Shown here: positions 28,002-64,000 of the stretch, in pieces
How the letters are laid out: each line of letters opens with the position of its first letter
Position numbering within the stretch: position 1 is the stretch's first letter
NCBI RefSeq assembly: GCF_902652985.1
Contig: NC_047030.1
Coordinates: 5,828,001 to 5,892,000 of the forward strand
Direction of reading: 5' to 3'
Origin: Pecten maximus
Lineage: Eukaryota
Length of the DNA stretch: 64,000 bases
The notes under the pieces: model-generated
Databases searched by the model: none
What the model saw: only the letters and a program-made list of their open reading frames with translations
What the model was told of the DNA's origin: nothing
Made by a program: the position numbers and the translations under genes

Positions 28002-29371
28002 CTGCAACAAACAAAATACAAATAATTAATGAATGAACAATTAAAACCCCATCGCTTTAACGAAATTCAAAAGAAAAAAATAACAATAACGAAGCTCTAA
28101 CTTGATAAGTTGACAAAATAACTACAAATTAAGCTAGGTTATAAACACTACCTATGAACACGCTTTCCTTTCGTAAACAGTGCGATAATTTACAACCAGG
28201 AACTTTTTAACTTGCACATTTCCGTAAGTTTTTAAAATACAATGTAAACTGTGCTATGTACAGTATAAATGGACTTAAGCTTATGCTAGTCCGTGCGCTT
28301 TGATATTACATGTACTTATTACAGTGGAACATTGTTAGTCAGGAGAGAACTTAGTTGCCATGTATAATATTACTCAGAATTTCTCAGGTCCCTGTGGCCC
28401 ATTCCACAGCAGAATCATTAAATCAAAATCACGTGAAAAGTAATGTCTATGCCTGTACACTAACCGAGTATCGTGACTGTATTATGTGTATAATATGGGT
28501 GTGTCATGTACCTATAACCGTCAGGGATGAACACCCACAAACCGGATGTATCTGGTTCGTATCTGCCGATCACACATCCCATTTTGCGTCAAAACAGATG
28601 CAAGCTTGATGATTGAGAAAATGAATGCATTGGTTGTTATCGATAATTATTTATTAAACGAGCCATTTTAATGTTCACACGTCAAGTGCTTGAAATGTAG
28701 GCTTGTCAAAGAAAATGTGAAAGATATCAAAATACATGTTATGTAATTTTACATTAATTTTACATATAATTTTGGACCAGAACATGACGTCATGGATTAT
28801 ATTTTGCATACATCATAAGAAACTCAGACTATGAAATTCAATCCATATCAAGAAATCTAACAGCGCAGGTGAAATATCGTGGGATTTCATGCATAATTTA
28901 TTACCCTTTGAAATGCTACCGTATATATCGTGCCTGACGCCTCCATTTCAAGGAATGATAAAAGAATACATTTAAAAGATTGCTTCGTGCGGGAAACCCC
29001 CTGATTCGGAAATTCGGCTTTCTTTTTCTGACAAGCAGGCGACCAAATCTGCTGTACATATATTACAACAATATAGATATTAGTGTTGTCCAGATGATCG
29101 ATTATAATCGAGATCTCATCGATAAGACAACCGACTCCTGACAATCAGTTATGAATTGAAATGTCAACATCGTTGACTCTTTTCAAAACCAGAAGTGTGA
29201 GTTATACTTTCATTTTCACTAAGAGAAAACGGGAGTTTTATGTTACTTAACTCTAACTCCAACTTGTAACCAACCATGTTATCTAATCATAGTTAATTGC
29301 AAAAAAAAATTAAAAATACATTGCGATCCAGGTATTCTATATCACCTTATAGACGACTTACACAATGATCA

Positions 29372-41390: not shown

Positions 41391-44053
41391 TGTTAAAAAG
41401 AACGTCCTGTGCATGTATACATTTTGAAATGTGTCACTATTCCATTGAATTAAAACACGCACTTGATTTTAGCACCTTACAAAAAAATGGTAGTTAGATA
41501 CAATCGAGAATTTAAACTGTATTGAACATCTACAATGTATGTCGTCCTTCTAGAAGACTTTCAAGTCATGATAATAATAACAAAACTGTTAATATATGTA
41601 TATCAGGTTTTGTTCAACTTTATGTGGTTCTATTATAATTCAATCAGAGGGAATTTTTTATCGATTTCCTTCAGGAGAATTGTGACTCATCTCTTTGTTG
41701 GTTAACATCTTTAGAATGCAAATATACCTTCCGTTACATATTATTAACATTCAGTGCTTATTTCAAAATCTGTCATGTTGTTAGTTACATAAACTCAGCT
41801 ACATACAAAAGTTCTCTGATAACCTTTGGACCGGAATTCAAACAATCCAGAGAATTAAGAGTCAATTTACAACAAAAAAACCCATCAATAAACTAGTATT
41901 ACACAACGATACTCACGCGGTTGGCGACCTTAACTATTCTACTGAACGCTTTGAAGGTTTGAATACTTACGTTATGTTTTGGACCAATCAAGGCCTCACT
42001 GTTGTGATTATTAACTGTTGATGGTGTTATAAATGTTCTATTGACCAGGGCAAAAAAAAGTCGTCGTCCGAGGTCGATATTTTTTCAATGGAAAAACCCA
42101 ACAAATTTAAACAGAAAAGCAAAAAATATACACCATGTTTATCTTTGATGTAGTGGTATGAATGACAACGACCTAGTTTGTAAAGCTTGATGGACTATGA
42201 CTATTCAATGTGGCCACGTGAGGCTTCGAAGCTTTGCAAAACAATCTATTATCAAACCGATTGCTTGTAAAGGACATCTTTTTAGTCCATAATTTCATTA
42301 AAATTATTCGTTTTATTTACCGAGGTGCATTGTAGTGATATAAACAATTATGGTAATTGGTCTTTTTGTTATACTACGACATTTTATTTCCAGGACTAAG
42401 TTAAGTCCACTTTTATGTTTTTTACTTCTAACGAGTCTCCGACGAGCTAAACATATTACAGGTAGTAATGATAAATGGCATTTATATCAAATATTGTTTT
42501 TATTTGTATAAAAACCCAAGCATGAAGATGAAATACGAACACACACCACGTGTTGGCTCAAAACCAGTTTTTTTCGTTTTAGATGTCACAATGTTTACAT
42601 GACTATTTGTAATTATCACAAGTCAAGAAAAAAAAACCAAACAGTTATACATATGAGGATTTTGGTCCACAGTGAAGGACATTCCAGCATGAAGGTATAA
42701 CCCCGACGCTCTAAATGCACGGGAAATACATGTTAACAGTTCGATATGCATGTGAATAAATTGTCGCCGGATTTTGTTGAATAGAATGTAAACGTGACAA
42801 TTATACATTTCTATCTAACAAAGGAGCTTCAACGTTAATATAAAATAACATTCAAAGAAGACAATAGTTGAGTAGCACAATCAATATTATTAGAGCATTG
42901 TAAACAACGTTGTCATCAGTATTATTTTTTGAGTACTTTGGTTGATTGACATACAATTGCATAAGAGTGTTTTTAAAGGTATGCTACCCTTTTATACTCG
43001 ACTATCCCGATTCATCCAAGGTCGTCTAAGGGCTTTTAAGTAGCACGTATTATACATGTTAAATTATTAAAATTGGCTAATGTTTGCCATAGTTATGCTC
43101 TAAACAACTGCACCAAGGTGAAATTAAATTATTATTTTATTTCAATGATTTTATCCTGATTTGAAAAGTATGGCTAAAAATATTTTGTGATCCGGTTTGT
43201 GCGATTACCATTTGCTTTGTCGATAACTTGTTCAAAGGACCCCTGAGGGATAATAATTTTAATATATTAGTGTCCTTGGTCGCTGTCCGTTTGTCGATAG
43301 ATTGTTCATGAGACTCCGGAGGAATATCATTTTAATATATTTATGTCGAAAGATTTTTCAAGACACATCGGGGAAAGTATGATTTTGATATATTTGTGTC
43401 TTCGGTCGCATATCACAAGATAATTAGACATTCGGCACACGGGGCAGTAAAGTGATGCATGTGGTTTTATAGTTCGATAGGCAGAGGCAGATACATGTAG
43501 TAGTTCAGAAGCAATTAAAGGTGGAGAACCCCTCAGTACAAATGACAATGACAGAGTCTTCAGACAAACGAAACCACGGGGCCAGCCATGGTAGACATTA
43601 GAAAATTGTATTAACAGAAGAGGAACTAATTTGTTCGTAACAAGATTCAAAATTTTTATTACTGTTACAATTATAACATGACAAACAAGAACATTGATTA
43701 CTTTAAAAAATGTACGCAATTAACTTTTATGCCTGCAAGCGTTCGCGTCTGGTTTTTGCAATTGGTGCACTTATTGAATTTGTAAATAAAATGATATCAA
43801 ATCATTCTTTTATTCCAATACAATATGCTTCAAATCAAGCTAGCAGTTTTAACAGTTATATGATGATATGATAGCGAAGTGTTTTAAATAAAACCGCTGA
43901 GGTTGCATTCAATTTTTTTTTAATTAGGTACCCACTTCATATCCCCAAATTTAACATTCATCAAAACATATTTCTGTCAATGTCGGTGAGGTAGAGGACA
44001 GGCCCGGCATCCATTGGAGACTTTCCAAAACAATGATAATTCCACTATACATA

Positions 44054-45192
44054 TCATTTCGTGGGAATATCTACATGTTTCAAAAGCAAGTTATTATAAC
44101 CGACGACTCCAGTTAACGATTCGAAAGACACAGAGGATCCGATATACCAAATTCCATATTTCCCTTGCATGTCGAATATATCCCATAATATTCCACTAGC
44201 CATGTCAGGAATGGAAAACCTAGGGAAGTAGTTATCCCACACTATTTGTTTCTGCACTTTCAAAACTTTTGCCTGATTCACATTTTCGATGTGATTTCGT
44301 AAAATCCGTTTAGCAGTTGCCCTGTTTGGCCTCGATTGGGGCTCCTGGTAGTATATGGACGACTCTATTTTCCTACCGTCGGTTCCACCCGGATATATCC
44401 CACTGGAGTAGTTAGTTCCGAGAATATCACGTAACGAGGCATAGGAGTCTCGAAATCCCCAGACCAGATTATCAATTTTACTGTTGATGTTGTCGACGTA
44501 ATACCCCGTCGGAGCCCCACTCCGTCTGCCGTAAGTGGTGTCCACCAGAGTTGATATGATATAGTAGTCGAACGACCTTTGGAAATATGAATTCTCTTCT
44601 CTGTTAAATTGAATGATATTTGACATGGTTCTCAAAGTTGGAGTTAAGATAAGAAAGTCAAACTTTTCAAAACGAAAGAATTTGCAATCTCTATAGATAA
44701 CGCGAAAGCCCTTTCTTGTTCGTATAATTCCGAGAACTGGGCTATTAAGTTTGACATTCAAATTGTTCTGTCTTTTCATCTCCTGCCAGAGAAATTGAAA
44801 TCCTTTACTGAGAATTTTTATATTTCTTGTTCCATCAGTTCGCGGAATTATGCCCAGTAGGAATTTTGGCGTTAACCACATCATTGCGTACAGAGCGGAA
44901 ATCTCATCCACGTGACCATACCCTTGCATTGTGGCAGCAGGAATAAAGAGTGCCTTCAAAATTTCAATGTCATGTTTACGTAAAAAATCCAAAAAAGTCA
45001 TATTTGTTGCGGCTAGTACCGTCCGGTCTGGGCGCGGCATTAGCATCCCTTCATACTGGCCGAATAGCTCCCCATGTAGTCGAACATATTTCTGAATAGC
45101 CGCCATGAAAAACTGGAGCTCAGTGCCATTAGCCAGGTCGGGTCTTAACTTTCTAGCCTCCAATCCATAGTACTGGGATGTTTTCAGTGGTA
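44054..45192 (-). CDS. FAD-dependent polyenoic/linoleate fatty-acid isomerase-like flavoprotein, paralog 1, last exon
   Basis: Acceptor TTTTACAG at 45193, phase 1, then 378 codons open to the stop. Motifs MTFLDFL, QGYGHVDEISALY, KGFQFLW, FDFLILT, W.NYFPRFS and MQGKYGIWYIGSSVSFES. Confidence 0.88.
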
Positions 45193-45344
45193 CTGTAAAA
45201 CAGAGACGAAGTGTTCAAGCTTTGAGCTGACTCACATAGAAACATGCCAATTTCGTTTAACTTTAAGATCTGTTCATGGGTAACGTCAAAAACAGTGTAT
45301 ACTATGGTGATATAGATAAGTCATAATCAAAATAGTAAGATTTG

Positions 45345-45630
45345 GTTGTGTATGGTTTTGTACTATTTAGCATCTTTTCAACAGCTATGGTCATTTAGGA
45401 GGGGCTCCGTTGTATGCGAGATGCATGTGTGTTTTGGGAGCCTGTGGTACGTTCGTGTTGGTCTCCCTGTACAGGGTGGAACTGATGTCGCTACCTCCCT
45501 GAAGTCTGTGGTACGTTCGTGTTGGTCTCCCTGTACAGGATGGAACTGATGTCGCTACCTCCCTGAAGTACATTGCCACTGCCTCTAAGACATCCAGTAA
45601 AACATCATACAACCAATATAATGACAACGA
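45345..45630 (-). mobile_element. Degraded bivalve SINE with an internal 64-bp duplication (45442-45569)
   Basis: Homologous to the 30339 copy (GGTCATTTA.GA.GG.CTCC..TGGGAG.CTG.GGTA.GTTCGTGTT). Confidence 0.7.
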
Positions 45631-45872
45631 GCGAACCTATCGTTCTATAGTAAAATATCTCGACAGGAGAATACAAAACCTCCATCACAGAGCCAAATAT
45701 GGCCGATTCAAGGAATTCTATTCAGAAATTAGAGTAATTAAATACGGTTAGGTTTGTTTATACTACAAAATTAACATTTCTGTTTTATCTCTCATCAATA
45801 CAATGTTAATCTTAACTGTCTTAACTAACTGAATTATTGGTAGATACAGTCTAGTCCAGTTAAATTGTAGTT

Positions 45873-47050
45873 TATACCCCCGGGGTATCTACCATCCCAT
45901 ATACAGTGTCCCCACTCACCTGTATCCCCGGGGTATCTACCACCTTATATACAGTGTCCCCACTCACCTGTATCCCCGGGGTATCTACCACCTCATATAC
46001 AGTGTCCCCACTCACCTGTATCCCCGGGGGATCTACCATCCCATATACAGTGTCCCCACTCACCTGTACCCCCGGGGTATCTACCACCTTATATACAGTG
46101 TCCCCACTCACCTGTACCCCCGGGGGATCTACCATCCCATATACAATGTCCCCACTCACCTGTACCCCCGGGGTATCTACCACCTCATATACAGTGTCCC
46201 CACTCACCTGTATCCCCGGGGTATCTACCACATTATATACAGTGTCCCCACTCACCTGTACCCCCGGGGTATCTACCACCTCATATATAGTGTCCTCACT
46301 AATCCTGTACCCCCGGGGTATCTACCACCTTATATACAGTGTCCCCACTCACCTGTATCCCCGGGGTATCTACCACCTCATATACAGTGTCCCCACTCAC
46401 CTGTACCCCCGGGGTATCTAACACCTCATATACAGTGTCCCCACTCACCTGTATCCCCGGGGTATCTAGCACCTCATATACAGTGTCCCCACTAATCCTG
46501 TACCCCCGGGGTATCTAGCACCTCATTTATGTTGTCCCCAATCACCTGTACCCCCGGGGTATCTAACACCTCATATATAGTGTCCCTATTAATCATGTAC
46601 CCCCCGGGGTATCTACCACCCCATATACAATGTCCCAACTCACCTGTACCCCCGGGGTATCTACCACATTATATACAGTGTCCCCACTCACCTGTACCCC
46701 CGGGGTATCTACCACATTATATACAGTGTCCCCACTCACCTGTATCCCCGGGGTATCTACCACCTTATATACAGTGTCCCCACTCACCTGTACCCCCAGG
46801 GTATCTACCACATTATATACAGTGTCCCCACTCACCTGTACCCCCGGGGTATCTACCACTTCATATATAGTGTCCCTACTCACCTGTACCCCTGGGGCAT
46901 CTACCATATCATATATAGTGTCCCCACTCACCTGTACCCCCGGGGTACCTACCACCTCCTATATAGTGTCCCTACTCACCTGTACCCCTGGGGCATCTAC
47001 CATATCATATATAGTGTCCCCACTCACCTTTACCCCCCGGAGTATCTACC
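45873..47050 (-). repeat. Minisatellite, 45-bp unit, ~26 copies, derived from an exon/intron junction
   Basis: Minus-strand unit GTGGTAGATACCCCGGGGGTACAGGTGAGTGGGGACACTGTATATAAG-like. The first unit overlaps the exon end WVDTPGGK and its donor. Confidence 0.95.
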
Positions 47051-47244
47051 CACATGTCTGGGCCCGGCATGGGGAGGATGTCCCCAGCGTCATGCTCTCG
47101 GACCAGGTCGTATATCTCGGTGTAATCTGGTTGTCCGTAACATGTCCCAAATTCATGCGGAACACCTCGGTGGTATATCGTTCGTGACTTCCCGCCAACG
47201 TCTTCTGATCCCTCAAATACTACCACATTTTCAAATCCAGCATT
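47028..47244 (-). CDS. Fatty-acid isomerase-like paralog 1, internal exon
   Basis: Acceptor TTGACAG and donor AAG|GTGAGT, 217 bp, phase 0-1. Encodes NAGFENVVVFEGSEDVGGKSRTIYHRGVPHEFGTCYGQPDY (the GG motif of the amine-oxidase-fold flavoproteins). Confidence 0.9.
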
Positions 47245-47487
47245 CTGTCAACATTCAAGTAAGATCGTTAACATACATTGTACTTTAATGTGACATATAC
47301 AGGATCTTAGAAATGGCGACGATCAACATATTTCTGTAGTTTTTTTCTGTTTTTCATTAAAAACTGACATAACATTAAATCAACCTCACAGTGGTATCCT
47401 CTACACTGTTATTGTTTTAATTCTTGTTCCTATGTGCATACATCGTATGTCATTTAATTTACATATAAAACACATTAACCTCCATAC

Positions 47488-47606
47488 CTTAAGCTTGTAA
47501 GCCATGTGAATCCCGGAAGGTCCCCCTCCAACAATAGCTATTTTGTCTTTTAGAGACTTAGGACCTGGGATCCTTTTCATACTCTTCGGTATTTTTTCAA
47601 CATGGA
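47488..47606 (-). CDS. Fatty-acid isomerase-like paralog 1, exon with the FAD-binding GxGxxG motif
   Basis: Acceptor TTTACAG and donor AAG|GTATG. Encodes KDKIAIVGGGPSGIHMAYKLK. Confidence 0.88.
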
Positions 47607-48568
47607 CTGTAAAGGGAATCATATCATGTAAGTGTATAAATATCAACGTTACAGAACTAACCGTTATCAACATTATGATTCACTATTTTAATTATTCATC
47701 AAAGAAGAAAACAAGACATAGGCTTAAACGAAAACAAGTACATTGTATATATATTTATGTAGCAGTAAATACATTGAAAATCTGACAAACAAATTATATG
47801 ATAAGGAAGGAAATCCAGCTTAACCAACATGTCGTTTAATATAAAAAAAAATCATTTAATAATTCTAAAATGATATAAACTTAGCGCAGTTTGCAAACAA
47901 AACAAAAGCGGTAAACAACAGTAAAAAGGTACAAAAAACACACACACACACACAAACAACAAAAAAACGAAAAACAAACAAAAAACAAACAAAAGAAACG
48001 TTAACTCTTTGTGAAATTCATAAATGCATACTTTCGGAATATTTTACCTTTTGAAGTGTACATCTATTTTGCATACAGGGAGTTATCTCCCTATCCACCA
48101 ACTAGATTCTATGTGATTCCGCTAATAACAGTAACAACAGTTTTAAAAACTAATTTGAGAGAATTTCATGAAAACTCATGTTTTGGAGCAAAGGAGAATT
48201 AAGATTTTCGCTAACAAGTGATTAAGCTAAGCTCCTTTGAACAGATCGGCCCAGGTAGTAATTTATATTAATTAGCCTTGTCTGAATAAATAAGGTAATG
48301 GATGACTGTTATGGTAGTTATTTCCCTTCCCTCACGTTTAACGTAAGAATGTTATATATCTGCCACAATTAGACAACATTGCCTTACTGTATAATTGATT
48401 TACATTGTACGTTTTTCGTCTTGTGTATATTTTGTATGTTCAGCTTACGACAGTCATCTTAACTTAGCAATATAGAGAACATGCCGAGTAATGGAAACCT
48501 TCAGTGAATCTGCTGTGACATTAGGATTTGCATGTCCTGAACTGGTACAGCAATTCATAAGTGTATGT

Positions 48569-48675
48569 AACCTCGAGATACCGTGCTACGGTAAACCTCG
48601 AGATGCCATGCTACGGTAAACCTCGAGATACCATGCTACGGTAAACCTCGAGATACCATGCTACGGTAAACCTCG
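48569..48675. repeat. Tandem repeat, 25-bp unit, ~4 copies
   Basis: AACCTCGAGATACCATGCTACGGTA. Confidence 0.92.
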
Positions 48676-49058
48676 TGCAATAAATACTCCTCATAGCAGA
48701 GTCTCAACCTTGTAAATGTTCTTTAACTTTCAAGATTAATTATCATTTCAAATGTTAGCAAGCTGTACAATCCAAGAGCTAAAACTTCATCTCTGAAGAG
48801 AGTTGACCTTGTTAATTAGGTGCTGTACAAGACACCGATACCTATTATCTAACATATACATATATAGTGCTTCTTAAAAGATAACCTTGTTTATGATATA
48901 TAATATCATAAAATACCTTCATTGATTCATAACAATGGAACTTTATATGTATTACAATATATATAGAAGGCCATCTCCGGCTGCCACTGGGTCATCTCTT
49001 CGTTTTACTGCGTCTAACCCATGGGAGCAAGAACTTTTGAAATCGGTACCTTTCCTAT

Positions 49059-49212
49059 TGTAACTACAGTATGTAAATCACATGATCGATTAAATTCCAA
49101 TCACTGCCTCCGCTAGGGTTCAAACCCAGGACCTCTGGCTTACTAGTTTTACGCTCAACTGATCGAGCTAAAAAGGTGTCTCTCTAGCCGAGAGATATTT
49201 ACCATGGTTACA
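49059..49212 (-). mobile_element. tRNA-containing mini-LTR, second family
   Basis: Perfect TGTAAC...GTTACA ends around a minus-strand tRNA-like segment (TAGCTCGATCAGTTGAGC..CT-AGT-AA..GGGTTTGAACCC). The flanks CTAT/TAAT are not a clean TSD. Confidence 0.55.
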
Positions 49213-50289
49213 TAATTAAATATGATTATATTCTCTGTCTGTAAAAACAGGAACGTCATACAGAAAATGGAATATATACTCGTGGGGACTTCGGTGTCGC
49301 ATTGCAACTCCGAGACCAGACGGACAACTCGTCCCAGAGTTGATTTGCTGTAGAGCGTGACAACCATCAGGGTAGTTTATACCTGTTCAAGCTTGTTTAC
49401 AGACTATTTACCTACCCTGGCGTGATCGAATACCACACTTGCCATTGTCGGTATATTATACTCGTGTATATATATCGTATTCGGTCATCCTTCACAACAT
49501 TGATGTCAAAAATTGAAATCGGTGTTTTACCTGTACCGATAGAAATTTAGAGCCATATTGACGGGTCGCTTACAGACGGGTCGCTTTACCTGTCCAAAAG
49601 CTAGGCCAGTGTCTGAAGTGAGAGGAATTCGCGCAGTGCTGTTGTTGGGTACAAGGTAACACCGTGCTTTTTCAGTGTATGGAGGTGCAGGTACTCTTTC
49701 ATAAGTATCCCCGGCAAATGGAAATTGGGCGGGGGAAGGTTCCCGTGAAGAAAATAGATACTAAACATATCTAAATTATATTAATAACTTATTTAAAAGA
49801 TATATTTAACATTTTAAAATGATTATTAGATACGTGTAATTCGATCTTTGTCCATTCAAATACAAAATTCAATAGTGGGTATCTCCCTTATAACGATAAA
49901 TGTTACATGTTAAAATTGATTACGGATTATCATGACACAATAACATGTGCGACACAGATATTAGAAATAAATAATTAATAAAGTAAAAATGGATTTTTAA
50001 TAACTAGGTAAACATTGTGTTTGTTTTAATTTTCTGTTCCAACGGGATTAAGTAAAACGCATTATTTACCACGTGTGAATTAATACTTTATAATCTGTAT
50101 CAAGTCCAAAAACTCAACGATTGTTTAACGTTATTGAACCAATAGTTGTTTGGATAAAATTACGAGCAACAGTTGGTATTATAATTGATTGATTGCACAG
50201 CTTTGGAAATAATGTTTTCATGTTGTGAAAAAACACATAACGCCAAGTTTTTGATAAGTCAGACTTTCCGGAAATAATCATCTGATCCA

Positions 50290-51032
50290 ATCATGAATAA
50301 TTCAGGATTTCAACACTTTAGGTGTAATTCTTGGGACTCGCGGATTCATAATCTAATAGTAAAGGCTAATTTAGTGGATATTATTTCAGCACAAAAGACA
50401 TTAAACTGGAAAATGAGAAATATCAAAGAAAAATTACAAAATATTGATGCTGACAGTTGGCAAAATCTATTGTGGAATGATGATGGAAATGTTAATGGTA
50501 ATAAATTACGTCTATATAGAACCTATAAGTATGAGGCTACAACAAGCGATTATGTGAAATTTGTTAAATTTAGAGAGAGAAGAGGTCTGTTGTGCAATTT
50601 CAGATGTGGGTCACCTTCCCTAGAATTTGAAAAGGACGACATACCAAGCCGATTTTACCCATAAAAAACAGAATCTGTAAATATTGTTTATCAAATGAGG
50701 ATGATGACAAATATGTTGATTTTAATAGTATGAACAGATTTAATCGGTCCAAATATCTAGTAGATAAATCTCCCCCAAATCTTCTCGCCAATCAACTTTA
50801 TGCTATGTGGAGGAGAAGAAGCAACTCTTTGAAGCTTTTTATTCATGTAACAACGTAGCATGGATAACCTTACCTTATTAACTTTTAGCATGCGATATCT
50901 TTATTGTGTTTTATAGTGTCTAAATAAGTCATAAATGGCTGGACATATCTTACTTTGAGAGAGATATTTTATGGTGTATTTTATATGTTGTAAGATGTTT
51001 GCCACTCTAATAAACAATTGAACTTGAACTTG
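50290..51032 (+). mobile_element. 5'-truncated LINE, 3' end of ORF2 and tail
   Basis: NKLRLYRTYK...LLCNFRCGS..L..E/GRYTKP.LP..NRICKYC..NEDD (remnant of the C-terminal zinc knuckle), then AATAAA and an (AACTTG)n tail. Confidence 0.8.
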
Positions 51033-51298
51033 TAACTGCCCCTACGGAGTCCGTCGGATACGAAGATAGATCACGTGGCCGCCACCAACGATGAACAACT
51101 TTATACTACATGCATTATAACACTTACCTCTGAGTCGGTTGATACGGTTCGGCGGCTGCCCATTTCCACCCTTTAAAAGTAATGTGTTATCTTCAATATA
51201 TAATATACTGACAGTATCCATAAAATTCAAAATATAATCTCTAGCTTCCATCCCACAAACCGAAGTGCAAATATTATAATATTTTTTTTATGCGAAAC

Positions 51299-52500
51299 CA
51301 TCAACATGTTCTCTACCGTCAGTGTTGATACAAAATCAACGTGTTCTCTACCGTCAGCGGTCATACACAATCAACGTGTTCTCTACAGTCAGTGTTGATA
51401 CAAAATCAACGTGTTCTCTACAGTCAGTTGTCATACACAATCAACGTGTTCTCTACCGTCAGCGGTCATACACAATCAACGTGTTCTCTATCGTCAGTTG
51501 TCATACACAATCAACGTGTTCTCTACTGTCAGCGGTCACACACAATCAACGTGTTCTCTACTGTCAGCGGTCATACACAATCAACGTGTTCTCTACTGTC
51601 AGCGGTCATACACAATCAACGTGTTCTCTACTGTCAGCGGTCATACACAATCAACGTGTTCTCTACTGTCAGCGGTCATACACAATCAACGTGTTCTCTA
51701 CTGTCAGTGGTCATACACAATCAACGTGTTCTCTACTGTCAGCGGTCATACACAATCAACGTGTTCTCTACTGTCAGCGGTCATACACAATCAACGTGTT
51801 CTCTACTGTCAGTGGTCACACACAATCAACGTGTTCTTTACTGTCAGCGGTCATACACAATGAACGTGTTCTCTACTGTCAGTGGTCATACACAATCAAC
51901 GTGTTCTCTACTGTCAGTGGTCATACACAATCAACGTGTTCTCTACTGTCAGCGGTCATACACAATCAACGTGTTCTCTACTGTCAGCGGTCATACACAA
52001 TCAACGTGCTCTCCACCGTCAGTGGTCATACACAATGAACGTGTTCTCTATCGTCAGCGGTCACACACAATCAACGTGTTCTCTACTGTCAGCGGTCATA
52101 CACAATCAACGTGTTCTCTACTGACAGCGGTCATACACAATCAACGTGTTCTCTACTGTCAGTTGTCATACACAATCAACGTGTTCTCTACTGTCAGTTG
52201 TCATACACAATCAACGTGTTCTCTACTGTCAGCGGTCATACACAATCAACGTGTTCTCTACTGTCAGCGGTCATACACAATCAATGTGTTCTCTACAGAC
52301 AGCGGTCATACACAATCAACGTGTTCCCACGGTCAGTGGTCATACACAATCAACGTGTTCCCACGGTCAGCGGTCATACACAATCAACGTGTTCCCACGG
52401 TCAGTGGTCATACACAATCAACGTGTTCTCTATTGTCAGCGGTCAGACACAATCGATAGTTTTTATTTACTGTCAGTTGTCATACAAAATCAAAATTAAT
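51299..52500. repeat. Minisatellite, 35-bp unit, ~33 copies
   Basis: CACAATCAACGTGTTCTCTACTGTCAGCGGTCATA. Confidence 0.97.
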
Positions 52501-52560
52501 CATACACTTTCAGCGTTTATAGAAAATCAACATGGAATCTCTATCGTTGAAAGGATAACA

Positions 52561-53065
52561 AAATTAACATAGTTCCTATTACACAATTAACATAGATCCT
52601 ATTACACAATTAACATAGATCCTATTACACAATTTACATAGTTCCTATTACACAATTAACATTGTTCCTATTACACAATTAACATTGTTCCTATTACACA
52701 ATTAACATTGTTCCTATTACACAATTAACATAGTTCCTATTACACAATTTACATAGTTCCTATTACACAATTAACATTGTTCCTATTACACAATTAACAT
52801 AGTTCCTATTACACAATTAACATTGTTCCTATTACACAATTAACATTGTTCCTATTACAAAATTAACATAGTTCCTATTACACAATTAACATTGTTCCTA
52901 TTACACAATTAACATAGTTCCTATTACACAATTAACATTGATCCTATTACACAATTAACATAGTTCCTATTACAAAATTAACAGAGTTTCTAATTACAAA
53001 ATTAACATAGTTTCTATTACACAATTACCATAGATCCTATTACACAATTACCATAGATCCCTATT
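52561..53065. repeat. Minisatellite, 23-bp unit, ~22 copies
   Basis: ACAATTAACATAGTTCCTATTAC. Confidence 0.97.
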
Positions 53066-54004
53066 GTTAGGGGTTTAACAGATTCACATGTTTACGCAAT
53101 AATCATCCATACAAAGTTAAACATCCGAAACAGTGTTGATACATTCAAAACTCGTAATGCTGCAATCAGAGTGTCAACAGCTGTTTTAGTTTCCCGAAAA
53201 AGAGCAATTGATGTGAGCCGTATTGACAATTCTGGAACAGCTAGATGGATTATAGCTATATAATGTATTTCTAAAGAGTTTTGAATGTTTTTTCTTAAAA
53301 GTACAGAAACAATTTAGCTTATGCTGCTTCATATAGATGTTCACTCCATGTGAGTGTGAAGTTGTTGAATAAAATTGATTATCATACCATAGTTTTATAT
53401 AGAAAATGTGTTAATTTTGTTGGTGCTGTATGTAAGTTCAAACAATAATTACAACATCAATGATAAATAAAATTAATATTAATAATTACATATGTGAAAT
53501 TTCTAGAAAATTATATTATTTCTTTCTGTCTGACATGGCTCGTAAGATATTTGAGAAAATAGATGATGTTTAAAACACAACGTAACACTGATCACTGTCC
53601 ATTTTTTTATGAGAACAAATTTGAAATATGAAGTTACATCAACCAGCGGCCTGTTTCATCAATATTCCTAAACCTAAGGATACTTCTTAACAGAAAATCT
53701 TTTCATAGAAAACCATTACAGAATCTACGGATGATTCCATAAGGTTTTTCCCTTTCAATTTGTAATGCTTTTCTACCGAAAGTTATCAGTCAAAGTGTTT
53801 CCTTTACTTACGGAATGTTGATGGAACCAGAGCCGGTTATATTAACGTTCTTATCATAAGGACATAATTAAATTCAATGGAAATCCTAGTTGATGATTAA
53901 CCATAAATTCTTAAATACTTTCTAAATAAAATGTTAGGTCGAGGAAAATTCCTAAATGTTAAGGAATATTGAGGACGTTTTGACGAGACTGTTGTTTTAC
54001 TTAC

Positions 54005-54052
54005 CTGTATAAGTATGTACACCAACACGACCACACTCCAGGGTCCCATCAT
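54005..54052 (-). CDS. Candidate first coding (signal-peptide) exon of isomerase-like paralog 1
   Basis: MMGPWSVVVLVYILIQ followed by the consensus donor CAG|GTAAGT. It is phase 0, so an additional small exon would be needed to reach the phase-1 acceptor at 47607; this was not resolved. Confidence 0.4.
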
Positions 54053-54762
54053 CGTGTCTGATGTCACGGCGGTCGATCGGAGTGAACTTCTGTAACGGAC
54101 CTGACTACGCAACAACTGTTACAATGTTCATCCATCACACCGAAGTTGTTTTGTTCCGATCTAATTAATTTGAATGTTTAATCTGATTAATTGTAAAGTG
54201 CGTCACGCGACCTGTTTTTATTGTCATTATAGTGTACTGAGACAAAGATGTTGACACTGATATTTGGTCAGTAACGCTGGATCTACGAATCATTATATCA
54301 CAATATGTCACACGTTTGGTTATTTCGTTTTATACTTACAGCTATTGAACTTTCTTCAGGTCGATATTATTGAATATGTCTCACCAGAACCGGAAGGTTC
54401 ATGACACAAAATTTAGGAATATCATTATACTCACTTCTGGATGATGAGTTGATTGGAAACCCAAATAAATCGTTTCACTAATTAATTAATTAATTAATTC
54501 AATGGTTTTATCTTTGGATTAACCGCATTCGTCGCTTCCTACAATTTAACCATTACTCGTATAAAGGCGAAAATCAATTTACCTACCATGATTTACATTT
54601 ATAAGTATAGCAGTCATGCTTCACTCGCCACCGATGTAAACATGTTGTACGAAGTTTGATACTCGAGAACATGTTTTAAATGTCACAAAATTTTGACAGT
54701 AATCTCCTACTGCTAGAAAAAAAGTCAAAAATGGATTTTGAGAAATGTTTGTTGGTGGAGAC

Positions 54763-56105
54763 TCATCATCAAACTTTATTTCCTCCCAAAGGAGATAAGT
54801 GGAATACAACAAAATCGACAGAAAAAAAAAATAAATAAGGAATATCAAAATAAGTGAAGAGTTCATTTAGCGCGCTTTCCATGAGTAGCTACTATGTAGC
54901 TTACTCACTATCGCGTACTTACATCAGAATCAGGGCGAGAATAAGCGCGTGACGCTAACGACGAATCGAGCCGCCTTCATAAGGAAGCGATTCCTGCAAA
55001 TATCATCATCAAATGGAATGTTCTTACTAGCGCCTAGTAGGACTTGAACAAATCCGTTGTTCTCGCATGTCACAATGTTGAAAACACGTGGGCCAAAATC
55101 GTTCAGAATATCTTGTAGGAAACGTTCACGTGATTCCCTGAAGTAGGGGCAGATGGAGCTGCTATGCACGATGACATCGCTGAAGGGCTGGTTGCACAAG
55201 ACACACAGTGCCCTAACATGGCTTGAGGTCAATGTTGCACATAACGATTGAATTATCTGGGTGTCTGGTAGAGATTCCGCGACTTGCCACATAACGTAAG
55301 GTCCATATGAGCAGTGGCACGCGCGAAACAACTCAAACTCGCGATCAGATGCCATGCGATCCTGTAAGGCTTTGTTTTCGGTACTGGATATAGCCGCCTT
55401 TACTAGACGTTTCCATTGCCGTTTCGGAGGAAAGACGTAGGTTTGAGTATATGTAACAAGGTACGGAAATAGTTTATCTCTCTGGAGCACATTGGTTATA
55501 TCTGGGAAGTACCCGTTGGCGCGAGAACATCCAGGTTTGAAGGCATGCGCGCTCAGAAACGAATATAGTAGCGCTAAGAAAATCCTTTTAACCAGAAAAG
55601 AGCAGTCAAGGGAGATAACTTTCTGTAAGAAGCACAGCTTTCTCCTGTCAATTTCCGCAGATATTCTAAATAAACCAAGCATTGATTCTACCATATCCGA
55701 TCTGGCCCGCCGATGAACACAGAGAATAAGTTTGGCAGCGTAGTGCTGGAAGCGTGTTAGCTTGGTAATATCACTTACGGTAAGGTTTAACCAATACTTA
55801 CAACGAGTGGGGCCTTTAAATTGCTTCAGAGCCCGCCAGAATATTTTACTGTAACAATCCGCAGCGTCATTCAAATTTTGCTGCAGGGAACGTAAATATT
55901 CGTCATACGCAGAGCACTGGACATTCTTGAAAGCGCGTTTTGCGTTTTTGTACAGTCGGTAAGATGGATGTTGAAACCCACGCGGTTTCCCGTCAACGAT
56001 CCACCCATTTCGCCTGTCACGAGCAGTGTTATGAGCTGCCTTCACATCATTATTCCAATAAGGTTTCAAACGAGGGTTATATCGCGATACTGGGATACAA
56101 GACTT
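54763..56105 (-). mobile_element. LINE (RTE-X-like) derivative with the RT domain deleted in frame
   Basis: ORF 54930-56069 joins the pre-RT linker (KPYWN...WIVDGKPRG..HPSYRLYKNAKRAF...KIFWRALK) to the post-RT region (LTRFQHYAAKLIL...ESMLG...IDRRKLCFL) and the C-terminal CxxC...H....C. The 3' end is GGAGGAAATAAAGTTTGATGATGA. Confidence 0.8.
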
Positions 56106-57439
56106 TGTGATAGTCCCTCGTCAGATAGGAAGACCGACGATGTATACCTTTGTATTCATTATCACAACTCCATACCAAATTCAAACAGGGGCGTTTAAAA
56201 ATGAATGTATAACGATATGTATGGTTTTACAAAGAATTATGAATACTAAGTAGTTTGACATGAAATTTGGTCTATTTAATGTTCTGTTGGTTGTTCACCT
56301 TTACAAGTGTCTGTTTGAGTTCATGTTTTGTCGTTTTAAGACTTGACCTGGAGTTACGTTTACACACAGAAATCCTCCATTTGTTTATATTGTTGTTACT
56401 ATAATGTCATTACATAACGGCGTTAGCTTCCCCATACACTGGTTCTAGTGTGTTCTGTGTAACTTCATATTATAATATGAACATTCTTATGCTAATTTTG
56501 TCATTATCTTTCGAATATTACGAAAATTAATAACAGGAAGAAAACAAAACAATAGACAATGACGTCACCATCTCGCACGTAAATGCAGGGAGTAACCTAT
56601 ATTTTTTTCTGAGGATTAAGCGTGAAAATGTATCATCTTTAGACAGCTCATTTATTGCTTTGTTAGTACTTTAGCGACTTAGCTGCAATATACAGGCTAT
56701 ATCCGGTGTCGAATGGAGACCAGTTCAATAAAAAAGGTAATATAATAGAGAGGGGGACAAGTTTAACCTTTTAGAGAGGCGTTGTGGTTCCATTAGTCTT
56801 AAAATCCATACGATAAGGTATCCAACATTGCTTTAGGTTGAACGCTAAGTAAATAACGAACAGGTGCATAACAACACGGATTACAGGTAACGTTCTGTGT
56901 AGGTTTGAGTGTCGCTGGATCACCGATCAACTGTAACTTCGTCATTTATATCGACCTGACAAGTAATCCATCATTGTATAGTACATGTAGTAGGGCAGTG
57001 CTGCACTGAGTAAACATCGAGTTTACAGTCATCATATTGATGATATCACTGAAGTAATCTTACAAATACAAAAAACCGATATCTGTTTCTGGGAATTGGT
57101 GTGACATCAGAGTGTCAGGCTAGGCACAATATCATTTATAGGAATGACGTATCTTTAGTACATAGTAAAAAGACAAAAAGATTTTAATCAACGTTGGTGA
57201 CAGTCCTAGTAAGACTTGACTGTGTCCTACAGAGAAGGTCACGTTTGTACAGCATAGATAACAAACTACCATACTGTAGGCTTACACATGTATCTTTTAC
57301 AAAAGAAAATTTCTGACAAATTTAGCATTCACTCCAATACTGTTTATTCCCCTCTTCTGTTTTCATTGATTTAATGTAATTATATGCTGAGTAATGAATA
57401 CTTAATGAATCGATACAATTATTATTATTATTATTTATC

Positions 57440-58030
57440 ATCCTTACCTCGATCTTAACTTGCAATACAACCAGCTTACAGCTAAGCTTTATGATAAAAG
57501 TGATGATTTCAATATAGAAAATGTTGATATTCCTCCACCACCCACGGTGTTTACATGTCGTAGTTACAGGATGTGTTTCATTTTCCCAATTTCTATTACA
57601 TATATCGACTGTGGAAAAACACAAAGTTTCGAAACCAAGGAGATCATATTAGAAAATATGCCTTATCCTTGATGTTTGGGATAAAGTCAGACTTGGTTTT
57701 TTGATACGCCTATTTGTCCAGTATGACCACAATAGTTTTCGTTTAAGACCTATAAATATGTATGGAGAAAAATATGCCTTACCATGATGTTTGGGATAAA
57801 GTCTGACTTGATTTTTTGATACACCTAGTTGTCCAGTATGACCACCACGGTTCTCGTTTTAAACCTAGATATCTATGGAGGGAGTCATCGATGGAACTGA
57901 AGACGCTTGCTCTACCGGATCACCTGGTCTTGTTCTCCTTTTACTTATCTCAGTGTCTTTGTGTATATCTTTAGTTTTAATTCGTAACCTTGTTTCGATG
58001 GATCTTGATTTTTAAGTCGTTATTCTCTAT
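57440..58030 (+). mobile_element. Degraded Penelope-like element fragment
   Basis: YLDL.L...LTAKLYDKSDDFNIENVDIP resembles the PLE RT C-terminal LYDKRDDFNF.IVNFP motif. It includes a ~120-bp direct duplication (~57647-57880). Boundaries are approximate. Confidence 0.6.
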
Positions 58031-59989
58031 TGTTTTCTACATTATGTACAAATTTGTAAAATATTAAATGAACTCGGTTATGACATTCCTTCGGGGTATT
58101 TCCCTTCGTGGGGCCCTCGAGAGGAAATCTCGCTCACAGAAATCAGTTTGTTATTATAACAAACACAATAACGTAGTGTTTTAAGCAACAAGACAGCATC
58201 ATCTATTATGGGGATTTAGGTGTTTTGCTGACCTGTCCAACATGCATGGTCAAATATTAATTTCCATGAAGAGCTTTGTATTAAGTCGGTATTATCAACC
58301 GCCGGTAACACACAAAGCCACTGCTGGACACTAGACAACAACAAAGCCGACGCCATTTCACAAAGGGTATATTTACTACGAAGAGACGGGGCCTTGAAAT
58401 AGGGCCGGATTACAGAATAGACAGAGTCCGGATTAGTCAGAGTTAAACTACTAGACAAATACAAAAAATATTCGGAACCAATTTATTCGTCCGGTTTAGA
58501 CAAAGATCCGGACTGGACAGAGCCCGGTTTAGACAGTCAACTATTATCTAGTAAAACACTATTTTCAAAATATATTAGCTATACCATGCTTCAAAACATA
58601 AAGAAAACAAATGACATGTGACTATAATTTGATAAAATATTATTTTATTATTCTAATGCATATTCATATAAAACACCATGTTATCATCACCTTTCCTAAT
58701 GTTAAACATTATAATGTTGTATGTAAACATATAAATATATTGGAATTCTTTTCTTTGTAGGCACTGACATTTAATAACATCTAAAAAGTTTAATAATTTA
58801 TATAAGAATAATTTACATCAGTCATATAAAATCTAATACCTTAATAAATTCCTAACATAAAAAATAGAAAATATTTACATTTTTTTCTGGAATCTCTATG
58901 TCTCCATTTTGCTAACAAAACAATCATCTAATTAATATAATCAGAATATATAACAAAACGAAAAAAAAAAATCCTTTGAACTAATATCAAATAAAATACA
59001 AAGCGGTCCTATAATCAGCGCATTGTGAACGTAAAATGTTAGCTCAAATTAAAGCGTTTTACATCGATGGTTTACCCTTGAGCACCACGTATGAGCGGGT
59101 TCTTAATATATTCACGTAAATGTATATATAAAAAACAACCTAAGTGTTTGTGATAATAGTGAAGGAAATTAAAATATGAAAATAATGTGCTGGTAATGTA
59201 TAAGCTTTTATGTTGTATTGGTATGATATAATTACAGCTCCGACAAAGTTAAACATATAGAACTTACATGTACGTGTCATATGCATATTAAAAACAGAAA
59301 TTGCAGTATTTCTATAACAAACAGGGTACTTATATTTTCCATTATTTAAACAAGAAGAACACGTTTTCCTGGATTACCTTCCCTGTCAAGATATTTTCTT
59401 CAGTTTTTGCGTCATTTGATGCAGATTCAGATGCCAGATAGACATATATCCCGACACCTGTTGTTTCTGTTTTAAAATACGCAAACATTAAGCAACCGTT
59501 ATTATGTTAAATTTTAGAGACATATTGTTTTTGCTCCTTTTCTTATTTAGTCCCCAAAATAAAGTTTCTTTTTCCTATTATTATAAATATTTCTTCCACT
59601 TTCTTCCGCCGACATGTTTCTCAGAAACAATAGGATGGAATTCAAAGAAACTTTGCATGCCCGGCGGTGTGAGTATTTTTGTTTTTCGATCGGTCACCCG
59701 ACCGGTCAGCCGGACAGAGGCCTCTGATTGGTCAAATTAGATCCTGTTCGATTTTGATAAAATTTGATCAATATGTGTAGTATGATACTATAAACACTAT
59801 TATGATATCAATAACTTTACTTACCACTGCAGGTGTCATGTTGGGGACATATGTAACTGTTTCAGTTACAATCAGTACTATTTAATATGGGAATTGCTAT
59901 AAATAAGGTCATATATTTATTTAACCAGACTGATCAACTGCTCTGACTGGATGGTATTTTTATCTTGAATGATAGCGGATCTTTTAAGT

Positions 59990-61140
59990 TTAGTTATTAC
60001 ATACAAACTGTCGTAGTAGTAAATTGTTATAATCGACCACACTCTTCACAGATTCAAAACTCACCGACGACCCAATATACCATATTCCGTGTTCTCCTTG
60101 GATGTCAAATATATCCCATAGTATTCCCATTGCCATATCCGACACGGAATATCTTGGAAAGTAATTCCAAATCATTCTGTCTTTTATTTTCAAGTTGGTA
60201 GCTTTTTCTACGTTCAAAATATGATCCTTCAACTTACGAGTGAGCGTTTGCCTGGATGGCCTTTCTTTTGAAAACTGATAATACACGGATGACTGTGTGT
60301 AGAGTCCATCTGGACCGTCCGGATACATACCGCTAGTGTAATTTGCATCTGTTATGTACTTCAAAGATGAATATGAATCTCTATGAACCCAGACTGAACT
60401 CTCTTCCTTGCTGTTGATGTTGAAAGTAAAATAATCCTGAGGAGACAAACCACGATTAGCACCATAATCAGTATCCGCCAAGGTCGTTGTGTAGTAATAA
60501 TTGAATGTCCTGCTGAACAGTTCTTGTGCTTTAGGATCAAAGTTGATTACGTTTGACATAAATTTCATCGTTGGACTGGTTATGATAAAATCGAACATTG
60601 CTCCATGCAATCTGCCACATTTCCAATATTTAACGTAGAATCCGTCACTGTGTTTTAATCTCATAACTTGTCTTACTGGACTCGATAATTTGACATTGAG
60701 ATTGAATTGCCTTGCAATTTCCGACCACAAAAATTGAAATCCTTTGCTTAAGATTTTTACAACACTTTTAACTTCCGGTGATGGCGGTGTCGCTACTGCC
60801 GTCAGGAATCTCGGTGTCACCCACATCATTCCATACAGAGCTGATATTTCGTCTATATGTCCATACCCTTGGGCTGTCATTGCACTGACAATCAATCCTT
60901 TCAGTACTTCTATATCATGAAATTTGAGGAATTCGAGAAAAGTCATGTTGAGTTGTGATAGTACAACACTAGATGGTCTTGGCATCAGCTCCCCTTCGTA
61001 CGACCCAAACATTTGACTGTGAAGTCCTACGTATTTACCGATTGCCTGTTGGATGTAGACCGCAGCCACTGTTACGTTGGTGATATCTGGACGAAGTGAC
61101 GCCAATATTTGAAGATTGCTTTGTAGATTTGATAAAGGTG
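59990..61140 (-). CDS. Fatty-acid isomerase-like paralog 2, last exon (upstream exons not found in the window)
   Basis: Acceptor TTTTACAG at 61141, at the same position and phase as in paralog 1. There are 382 open codons colinear with paralog 1 (QGYGHIDEISALY, KGFQFLW, WNYFPRYS, IQGEHGIWYIGSSVSFES). Confidence 0.88.
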
Positions 61141-61145
61141 CTGTA

Positions 61146-61430
61146 AAACAATAAAACAAATATAGGTATATTGATAGTAAATAACAATAAAACAAATATA
61201 GGTATATTGATAGTAAATAACAATAAAACAAATATAGGTATATTGATAGTAAATAACAATAAAACAAATATAAGTATATTGATAGTAAATAACAATAAAA
61301 CAAATATAAGTATATTGATAGTAAATAACAATAAAACAAATATAGGTATATTGATAGTAAATAACAATAAAACAAATATAAGTATATTGATAGTAAATAA
61401 CAATAAAACAATGATAACAAAGTATATTGA
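61146..61430. repeat. Tandem repeat, 36-bp unit, ~7-8 copies, abutting the splice acceptor of paralog 2
   Basis: AATAAAACAAATATAGGTATATTGATAGTAAATAAC. Confidence 0.95.
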
Positions 61431-64000
61431 TAATAAATATATATGACATCTACATATAGTAAATGTATTGGTGATGATAATAATATTATTATAATAATAA
61501 ACAGCATTTATATAGAACAATTGAACACAAAATTGGTTATATATATTATACTTATGTTTTACAACATTTAGATAGAACAATTTCCAATAACAAACACAAA
61601 AATATGACTATATATATATTACGAATGCTTTACAACATTTAAATATAGCAATTTTCAATTAAAAAAACGTAAGTATTTGTTGATAATACTTACATTATAT
61701 ATACAAAACAATTTTCAATTAGAAAACATAAAATATTTAATTGATATATAATACTACATGTATTACTATAAAACATTTATATAGGATACTTGTCAATTTC
61801 AGTAACACCAAAATGAGATCATTTATATAGAACACTATTTAGTTTAAATGGAAATAAAAAAAACACACTCTATTGTGCTTTATATTACAGGTGAGCTAAT
61901 CGTTCAAATGTTACACAATGGGGCATTCATAAATAGAAGATATTGAATGGCTTCAACTAGACGGCGCCATTTTGATAGGACTGACCAACGCAATTGATAA
62001 GTTTTCTGTTGTTATCGGATAATCTGTGCATGAATAGCTAACGTCAAATATGTATTTTGTCAAAAACTAGTCTGAATATTTCAGAAATACAGCAAAATAA
62101 CCATTTACGTATCTATCATCGTTTCGATTGGAAAACGTTTCAATGAGGTGAAAACAAAGTTTCGCCCTGATTGGTCAAAAACGAAAAACTTATATTTTCA
62201 CTGCAAAACTTTATATTTTCACTGCTCATTTCACTCTCAAAAATGCACACAAAAATATGATTACATATCAGGAACATGATTCACATTTTGTTAATAAAAA
62301 GTCATTAGTTTACGAGAGCAAATTATAAGAATATATACAGGGCGTTAAAGTGTAGACTGTAAAAACAATCTTAAACCTCTTATAATTATAGGGATACAGA
62401 GGGACAAAGGGGTTCAGTAGGGGATATTTTAAATGATCGCGAAAAACAATTAATACGATGAAAATATCGCTGTCATTGAAAGATTGGTTTTGTTTAAGGA
62501 ATTAACCAACTAATATAATGTTAAATTTCATTTCTGCTATCAACTATAAATAATTTATGACATCATGTAAGTGATTGAATTGTAAAAGCAATCCAATATT
62601 TACATTCAACGTATTTTTTTCAATAATAGACAAGTCAGACAACAATAGACATCCTTGAGGAAGTATCTGCAGTTCTTGATATCCGTAATCAATATTCATA
62701 CAGTAACAGAACATGTACAGCAAGACACTTGAAACAAAGGTCATTGTCTTTCAACAACAATAGCCAAATAAAAGCCCCAATTGTTCGGATGTCTAGTAAT
62801 TAGTATTGACATATTTAAATAAACTAGTCCCGCCCTACAAAAGACGGTACATTCTGTTATATTTAAATACTTTGTGACATCATTTTAATCTTTCACAAAA
62901 CTAAATTATATTTTTCCTCGTGTGCTACCTTTAAAAGAAAATGTTTTTATAATAAAAACACATTTTTTTACCTGACATTGCCCGAACGTATTCCAGACAC
63001 CTCCTACGGCGTGAATAATCCCAATATCGGGATATATCAGGTCTACGTTTGGTTGAAAACATTACAATATATATATATTTTATGCTAATAAATCATGCAT
63101 ACTTGTAATCGTGGGAAGACATTTCATTAACATGGCCAATTAACAAACACAGTGGTTGTGGGCAGCATTGTTAGCTTGATCAAGATATCTGCTATTTTGT
63201 TTGACAGACTGTTATGACAGTGATGACAGTATATATTGATTAAACAATGTAGACGGCGTTAAATACTATGTCTCCAACTATTTGGTTAATGTAACGATTT
63301 TGACACGGTTTTTATTTCGGACATATTATTGAGAGGACATTATATTTGAAGCGACTATACCTTAAGATTTAATGATCAAATCAGACGAGTTTAAGAAATA
63401 GCGATACCCGAGCCTACACTGTAAACAACACGCGATGAATTTACCTCGGCTGATGTTTCTTTTTTTTAAATGCTACACGAACAAAGTCGATTGAGTCACG
63501 TGGAATGCATGTGACGAGTCCGTGCAGCGTTCTGATTACGAGCAATAACGCATGCTTTCTTGTAGGACCTGTCGAATTATACACTGGTTAAGGTATTTGC
63601 AAACTACGATTGATGAAGTTTATAAGATATTTTGCCTGAAAACATTTTCCAAGAATTATTTTAAAGTTGTAACCGCTTTAATTTAAGGCTTATTTCAAAA
63701 GCAGACAAATTTTCTATAGATTGATGATATTGATAAAGCTGCTTGGGTATCATTATGATATCCGCTTTCATAAATGTCTGTATAACACAATACATTTACT
63801 CAAGGGCAGCGAAGGCAATATAGACGCCTTGTATTTGTTTGAATTAGTTATGAGTCGCATGTACCTGTCTGTAAGAAAGTTTTCCTCGGCCTTGTAATGA
63901 TGATATTATTTAGTGTGTACGCTGTAGTTAAGGCTGTATTGGGACACATTAATACATAGCGTGACGTACCTGTTAAAACGTTTGACACACCACGCGATCT

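Follow-up and report, generated by a model that had tools for sequence, protein, structure and literature searches.

Conjugated polyunsaturated fatty acids (PUFA) are bioactive. To our knowledge, within the family considered here, flavoenzymes with a demonstrated ability to form them by direct isomerisation are limited to one bacterium and one red alga. The bacterial enzyme, the linoleate isomerase PAI of Cutibacterium acnes, is a cytosolic monomer that transfers a hydride to flavin N5 and back; the algal one, Ptilota PFI, is natively a secreted, glycosylated flavoprotein of ~500 amino acids (aa). The double-bond shift catalysed by PAI is non-redox and passes through a cationic intermediate that flavin adenine dinucleotide (FAD) stabilises (PMC13076199), and PFI converts arachidonate and eicosapentaenoate (EPA) into conjugated trienes (PMC7700177). 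Here we analyse 64 kb of chromosome DNA of the king scallop Pecten maximus (C16:5828001-5892000; the whole stretch is called the window), which carries two related genes on its minus strand. Gene 1 (LOC117344537) is complete in the window, and gene 2 contributes its last exon only. It is almost certain, in our judgement, that these genes are real and that they belong to the PAI family.

Sequence and predicted fold relative to PAI

A sequence-only reading of the window had proposed two same-strand paralogs with open frames, and both frames are real. The one at 44054..45163 (-), of 369 aa, is 100% identical to RefSeq P0001 ("uncharacterized protein LOC117344537 [Pecten maximus]", 482 aa). The other, at 59990..61507 (-), ends at 59990 and contains the last exon of gene 2, whose database protein is P0005 ("polyenoic fatty acid isomerase-like [Pecten maximus]", 536 aa). 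Searches and fold comparisons used the exon sequences and these two database proteins.

In Pfam, the family is recognised by generic models only, Amino_oxidase (PF01593, 55.2 bits for a cut-off of 19.8) and NAD_binding_8 (40.8 bits), and a search of the ESM Atlas yielded nothing beyond generic clusters of bacterial FAD oxidoreductases. The Amino_oxidase score would favour net-redox flavoenzymes, oxidases or dehydrogenases acting on a lipid, an amine or an amino acid, for example secreted enzymes generating H2O2 for defence. We consider this reading unlikely, though it deserves serious attention. The PF01593 match spans model positions 2-264 of 443 only; the substrate-binding and C-terminal parts of this model, or of solved oxidases, were not matched, and the solved oxidases align over the first 80-150 residues only.

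PAI behaved differently from these oxidases. In a single-sequence search of solved structures, residues 11-471 of full-length P0001 aligned with residues 6-416 of PAI (2b9w, E=1.5e-15), whereas all other solved chains matched the N-terminal FAD module at E 2.7e-5 or weaker. The last exon of gene 1 alone found a single chain, again 2b9w (E=4e-6). A profile built from an alignment of 28 diverse family members (A1) matched 2b9w from profile position 10 to 470, over PAI residues 4-423, with E=1.4e-57. The other chains of the Protein Data Bank, oxidases included, reached E 7e-18 or weaker on ~80-150 N-terminal residues. Past the N-terminal FAD module, therefore, no solved oxidase matches, while PAI is followed end to end with an E-value lower by 40 orders of magnitude, which argues against the oxidase reading.

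The predicted structure points the same way. An AlphaFold model of P0001 built with the A1 alignment had a mean predicted local distance difference test score (pLDDT) of 92.2 and a predicted template-modelling score (pTM) of 0.92. Foldseek placed 2b9w first (E 1.1e-29, template-modelling scores 0.76/0.86) and the flavin oxidase CpaO next (5.8e-22). With VIA-align, the model superposed on 419 of the 423 PAI residues at a root-mean-square deviation of 2.3 A (Z 39.8); CpaO followed at 31.2, and protoporphyrinogen, amino-acid and monoamine oxidases at 29 or below. The predicted fold thus matches PAI across all three domains. That the neighbours after PAI are CpaO, protoporphyrinogen oxidase, L-amino-acid oxidase and monoamine oxidase (Z 25-31) is nonetheless a point in favour of an oxidase.

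Among the 28 members, the FAD signature (G18, G20, G23, E42, G48 and G49, that is GxGxxG, the acidic end of beta-2 and GG) is invariant or nearly so. Beyond the FAD module, the family-invariant positions QGYG, Y205, YFP, QG and FE fall in stretches that the family has in common with PAI. Motifs also present in PAI (GYGH, YFP, MQG and SF) are invariant or nearly so across the family and count against oxidase chemistry; in the last exon of gene 1 they appear as QGYGH, YFPRFS, MQG and SSVSFES.

From sequence profiles and predicted structure taken together, the view that both proteins are specific, full-length relatives of PAI is strongly supported. All the animal and PAI motifs quoted in the sequence-only reading recur in the HMMER alignment to 2b9w, and the whole-length colinearity that it claimed is borne out by the profile (E=1.4e-57) and by the superposition (Z 39.8). 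It had also considered that the proteins might fall into another, already characterised animal flavoprotein family. This did not occur: PAI is best by both profile and fold, and all oxidases are weaker, being N-terminal only by sequence profile and scoring lower by fold (CpaO Z 31.2). Its assignment to a joint PAI/PFI family holds for PAI, by profile and fold; the link to PFI does not extend beyond database product names.

Gene structure, transcription and selection

Transcript contigs from four public runs, belonging to four different studies, were placed on positions 44000-47750 of the window, the gene 1 region. The runs are labelled only "RNA?", and since spliced contigs were seen in them, they do hold RNA. 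Two stretches, 45193-47027 and 47245-47487, are missing from the contigs; their ends read CT..AC on the plus strand, which is GT..AG on the gene strand, and the two corresponding joints of gene 1, 45192/47028 and 47244/47488, are present in runs of all four studies. The canonical splice sites that had been proposed for gene 1 are therefore used. A contig of 1945 nt from run X3 joins all gene 1 exons.

Loose ends of the X1, X3 and X4 contigs at 47606-47612 match the window at 51134-51163. In X1 the junction was read: exon 1 ends ...GACTCAGAG at 51128, where GTAAGT follows, and exon 2 starts from 47606 after TTTACAG. From a Met at 51251 (or 51221), the frame continues without a stop into exon 2. 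No convincing signal-peptide exon of gene 1 had emerged over 47.6-54 kb from tblastn and pattern searching, and the true upstream exon was recovered from the transcript contigs instead. Gene 1 has four coding exons (Table 1). The start Met of the RefSeq model (47580) is probably internal to the coding sequence: in X3 the start ATG is replaced by TTG, and X4 carries an in-frame 9-nt deletion beside it (window 47576-47580), an allelic variation which suggests that the annotated start is internal. The P0001 blocks found by tblastn in the window (47580..47488, 47247..47029 and 45193..44057) begin at this Met. The 3' untranslated region of gene 1 extends below 44000.

For gene 2, residues 155-536 of P0005 map to 61138..59993 (tblastn, 100%). 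The upstream exons lie outside the window, 1.1-2.4 kb past its end, with residues 82-160 at C16:5893084-5893323 and residues 40-82 at C16:5894275-5894406; exon 1 is further upstream of the latter. Gene 2, too, is best read as a four-exon gene. The last exons of the two genes are 54% identical (tblastn). The last intron has an identical position and phase in both (phase 1, before '(x)PL'), with acceptors ...ACAG/TA CCA CTG in gene 1 and ...ACAG/CA CCT TTA in gene 2. Because the acceptor falls at the matching codon position and phase, the description of a tandem pair with a shared last intron was correct. The proposed extents needed revision: the pair itself stands, gene 1 gains an upstream exon, and gene 2 has only its last exon in the window.

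Table 1. Positions of gene 1 and gene 2 exons and associated tandem repeats in the window
Feature	Position	Strand	Basis
Gene 1 exon 1 (coding, absent from RefSeq model P0001)	51128..51251	-	spliced contig ends; frame open into exon 2
Gene 1 exon 2: linker and start of Rossmann fold (KDKIAIVGGGPSG)	47488..47606	-	joint 47244/47488; tblastn of P0001
Gene 1 exon 3: remaining FAD-binding beta-alpha-beta unit (VVFEGSEDVGGKS...HEFG)	47028..47244	-	joints 47244/47488 and 45192/47028; Pfam Amino_oxidase, NAD_binding_8
Gene 1 last exon: substrate and capping domains (predicted), 379 codons and stop (44054-44056)	44054..45192	-	open reading frame; 100% tblastn to P0001; PAI alignment
Gene 2 last exon (P0005 aa 155-536 and stop)	59990..61140	-	tblastn 100%; acceptor TTTTACAG/CA at 61141/61140
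48-bp minisatellite, ~24 copies, most of gene 1 intron 3	45875..47050	-	Tandem Repeats Finder
36-bp tandem repeat, 7.4 copies, in gene 2 intron, abutting the last-exon acceptor on its upstream side	61147..61411		Tandem Repeats Finder

The four-exon structure of gene 1 was used only to assign codon positions to single-nucleotide polymorphisms (SNPs). Contigs and window differ at 22 exonic sites, and 20 of these differences are synonymous against 22% expected (binomial p about 1e-11); in the last exon, this was the case for 16 of 17 transcript SNPs. Gene 1 is transcribed and spliced, and such an excess of synonymous changes indicates a functional gene under purifying selection.

These data bear on the reading that the loci are decayed copies, bacterial or algal contamination or annotation artefacts, which has a negligible probability in our view. 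Broken copies of the family do exist elsewhere, as pieces with stops at C19:15.72-15.75 Mb and as matches with one stop each on C8 and C14, and gene 1 is probably annotated with a wrong start in RefSeq. Against this, both genes have GT..AG spliceosomal introns, spliced gene 1 transcripts were found in four studies, all but two of the 22 SNPs are synonymous, three other scallop genera have orthologues that are 75-84% identical, and the genes lie on a 37.8-Mb chromosome-scale contig amid animal repeats and zinc-finger genes. For gene 1, the pseudogene and contamination readings were rejected on the spliced transcripts and the synonymous SNP excess.

The 48-bp minisatellite begins within the 3' end of exon 3 and duplicates the exon-intron boundary. 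By motif count, 20 of its units carry a donor-like AG/GTGAGT, 48 nt (16 codons) apart, each of which would preserve the frame if used; only the first donor (47028) is used in the spliced contigs. Closely upstream of gene 1 exon 1 are two satellites, of 35 bp in 34 copies (51300-52493) and of 23 bp in 22 copies (52558-53065). Between genes 1 and 2, a 379-aa open frame (54930-56069, minus strand) had no Pfam match and may be a mobile-element remnant. About 16 kb downstream of gene 1, a 177-aa open frame (27488-28021, minus strand) has a strong match to the GLTP (glycolipid transfer protein) domain (E=1.2e-37); the presence of a second lipid-handling gene nearby is probably a coincidence. Open frames with C2H2 zinc-finger and FLYWCH domains occur at 8526-9161 (+), 9846-10502 (+) and 16442-18862 (-), one of them 806 aa long.

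Distribution and history of the family

Searched exhaustively with HMMER, 1.84 billion cluster representatives gave 716 clusters at E<=1e-10 and 126 at E<=1e-30. Named animal members come from scallops (Pecten, Argopecten, Mizuhopecten, Ylistrum), oysters (Saccostrea, Magallana (Crassostrea)), cnidarians (Hydra, Hydractinia, Clytia, Actinia, Dendronephthya) and one flatworm (Macrostomum). Protist members were found in an oomycete, red algae, a chlorarachniophyte, a foraminifer, a stramenopile and a dinoflagellate, and bacterial ones in metagenome-assembled genomes of Planctomycetota and Zetaproteobacteria. No vertebrate, arthropod, nematode, gastropod or echinoderm name was present among the matches, which is weak evidence of absence from these groups, as the name searches were not exhaustive.

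Two trees were built, one of 161 rows with FastTree and one of 52 rows with IQ-TREE (LG+C20, quick search), for which support is given by the Shimodaira-Hasegawa-like approximate likelihood ratio test (SH-aLRT). All cnidarian and bivalve proteins, together with eight further sequences, formed one clade (SH-aLRT 99) inside a family otherwise made of protists and bacteria; the sister of this animal clade was a pair of non-bacterial sequences. The Macrostomum sequence was placed elsewhere on a long branch, and its position is unreliable. In the 52-row tree, support was 94 for the bivalve subclade and 99 for the scallop subclade. The horizontal acquisition suggested as a possibility by the sequence-only reading is not demonstrated by this topology, a single well-supported cnidarian-bivalve clade with non-bacterial sisters. 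No evidence points to a recent transfer; the animal genes may stem from old vertical descent with many losses or from an ancient transfer.

The scallop proteins fall into three subfamilies with several genera in each. Argopecten P0002 and Mizuhopecten P0004 fall together with gene 1, joined by Ylistrum P0003 in the 161-row tree, and Ylistrum P0007 and Mizuhopecten P0006 fall together with gene 2. Since each subfamily spans several genera, the tandem duplication took place before the scallop radiation. In Mizuhopecten and in Ylistrum, the orthologues of gene 1 and gene 2 likewise lie on one contig.

The local expansion that had been proposed is confirmed, the two genes being tandem duplicates within a family of at least eight loci in P. 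maximus: gene 1, gene 2, C16:21.5 Mb, C16:32.9 Mb, a cluster at C19:15.72-15.76 Mb, C8:15.77 Mb and C14:1.48 Mb. In the second cluster, on C19 (15724000-15764000; L002, L006, L008, L011, L012, L016 and L018-L020), one copy looks intact and shares 59% identity with gene 2, while several further pieces contain internal stops and are decaying duplicates.

Putative reaction and comparison with known enzymes

In most members, among them P0002, P0004, P0005, P0007, P0020, P0032 and P0042, a hydrophobic N-terminal segment lies 40-70 residues ahead of the Rossmann fold, and gene 2 has a clear predicted signal peptide. Glycosylation sequons (N-x-S/T) are conserved at P0001 position 167 in 14 of 21 animal sequences, Hydra and Actinia included, and at positions 364 and 125 in 12 and 7 of the 21. 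Together, the hydrophobic segments and conserved sequons point to secreted glycoproteins, and we infer secretory-pathway entry in this form for most members, gene 2 and the gene 1 orthologues among them.

As to the reaction, isomerisation of PUFA is the best single hypothesis for the scallop proteins, one that we advance tentatively from their sequence relationship. Arachidonate, EPA and docosahexaenoate (DHA) are abundant in scallops. By analogy with PAI (PMC13076199), a polyunsaturated acyl chain would bind in a hydrophobic channel above the flavin, and FAD would stabilise a cationic (carbocation) intermediate. The double bonds would then move into conjugation with no net redox change, and the expected products would be conjugated dienes or trienes from arachidonate, EPA or DHA.

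Several observations weigh against this hypothesis. Identity to PAI is only 20-21%, and neither Pfam nor NCBIfam has an isomerase-specific model with which the isomerase class could be tested. Ptilota PFI was absent, by name, from the family matches and the cluster look-ups, and it is not placed in the tree. Our literature search found no paper on an animal homologue, and hence no reported activity for an animal member; the earlier statement that no characterised animal member was known agrees with this. The PAI fold also houses many true oxidases, as the Foldseek and VIA-align neighbours indicate. Exon 1 of gene 1 encodes MEARDYILNFMDTVSILYIEDNTLLL..., a poor signal peptide. The family of the scallop genes has Q where the FGYG motif of PAI has F, and every cnidarian and bivalve protein sampled has D, T, G, S or N at the position aligned with PAI Arg88. 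A defence oxidase would, by analogy, also be compatible with a flavoenzyme family that is secreted and locally expanded.

The last three points deserve more detail. Arg88 of PAI reportedly anchors or gates the fatty-acid carboxylate; we take it to be the carboxylate gate, and the roles of Arg88 and Phe193 are both presumed here. At its column, P0001, P0005, P0020, P0042, P0030, P0053, P0056 and P0057 have D, T, G, T, S, N, S and S, respectively, in a loop where the alignment is gappy and moderately reliable. Most non-animal members, protist and bacterial, have R or K at this column. Two residues past it, a Trp is common to the cnidarian and bivalve proteins sampled. As the animal clade has no arginine aligned with Arg88, the substrate head group that it recognises may differ from a free carboxylate, and the animal branch may thus recognise the head group differently from PAI.

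The loss of this arginine in the animal clade would also suit an oxidase, as would the signal peptides and the lineage-specific expansion, which are typical of bivalve immune effectors. An analogy for such a defence role is offered by the molluscan L-amino-acid oxidases of the same superfamily, such as escapin, achacin and aplysianin. Another reading keeps conjugation as the reaction and changes the substrate: an old, animal-specific PAI branch of cnidarians and pteriomorph bivalves, devoid of the carboxylate-gating arginine and exported as a glycoprotein, might conjugate esterified PUFA, N-acyl amides or other polyenes. We regard this fuller scenario as improbable. If it were true, animals would make conjugated polyene lipids endogenously, by flavin chemistry and independently of lipoxygenases, for use in signalling or defence.

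It could also be that the proteins act on polyenes other than fatty acids, for example in the cis-trans isomerisation or desaturation of dietary carotenoids, which colour scallop tissues, in the manner of the carotenoid isomerase CRTISO, which belongs to the same superfamily. The missing Arg88 equivalent would fit a substrate without carboxylate, phytoene desaturase is among the structural neighbours (Z 25.4), and there are weak N-terminal matches to CrtI-family models. CRTISO itself offers a precedent, as a second FAD-dependent non-redox isomerase (PMC13076199). However, the CrtI and phytoene desaturase matches are weak or limited to the FAD module, and oomycetes and hydrozoans without pigmentation have members of the family as well, so that we find this reading very unlikely.

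Returning to PUFA isomerisation, an activity of this kind in scallops and cnidarians would give animals an enzyme source of their own for conjugated dienes and trienes from EPA and arachidonate, with relevance to marine lipid signalling, seafood lipid chemistry and biocatalysis. The value of the observation is tempered by the existing isomerase-like label, and the present data do not separate isomerase from oxidase chemistry. RefSeq already applies the product name 'polyenoic fatty acid isomerase(-like)' to gene 2 and to scallop, Hydra and sea-anemone relatives, and the finding is therefore not new at the annotation level. The locus represents an animal branch, as yet uncharacterised, of an enzyme family that is already known, and no new kind of system.

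Compared with the flavin amine oxidase superfamily (monoamine, L-amino-acid, polyamine and protoporphyrinogen oxidases and CpaO; PF01593), the scallop proteins have in common the two- or three-domain FAD fold and the pattern GxGxxG...E...GG. They differ from it in that sequence similarity ends after ~80-150 N-terminal residues and in Z-scores 9-15 below that of PAI.

The likeness to Ptilota PFI is one of product names: in RefSeq and UniRef, gene 2 and its relatives from Mizuhopecten, Hydra and Actinia are named after PFI. The signal peptides and conserved sequons of the animal members are in keeping with the secretion and glycosylation of PFI, and in both cases the source organisms are marine and rich in C20 PUFA. 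The named red-algal relative, from Gracilaria, lies outside the cnidarian-bivalve clade. One family member of 500 aa, P0070, was considered as PFI; its Rossmann fold starts at residue 12, leaving no signal peptide, and it is therefore probably not PFI.

The closest counterpart remains C. acnes PAI. The animal proteins are ~60-110 residues longer, with insertions and mostly with a signal peptide and N-glycosylation sites; their Arg88 column is non-basic, Q replaces the F of FGYG, and their genes have introns. With PAI they share the FAD-binding N-terminus, colinearity from end to end, the predicted three-domain fold, and the motifs GYGH, AxY, YFP, MQG and SF.

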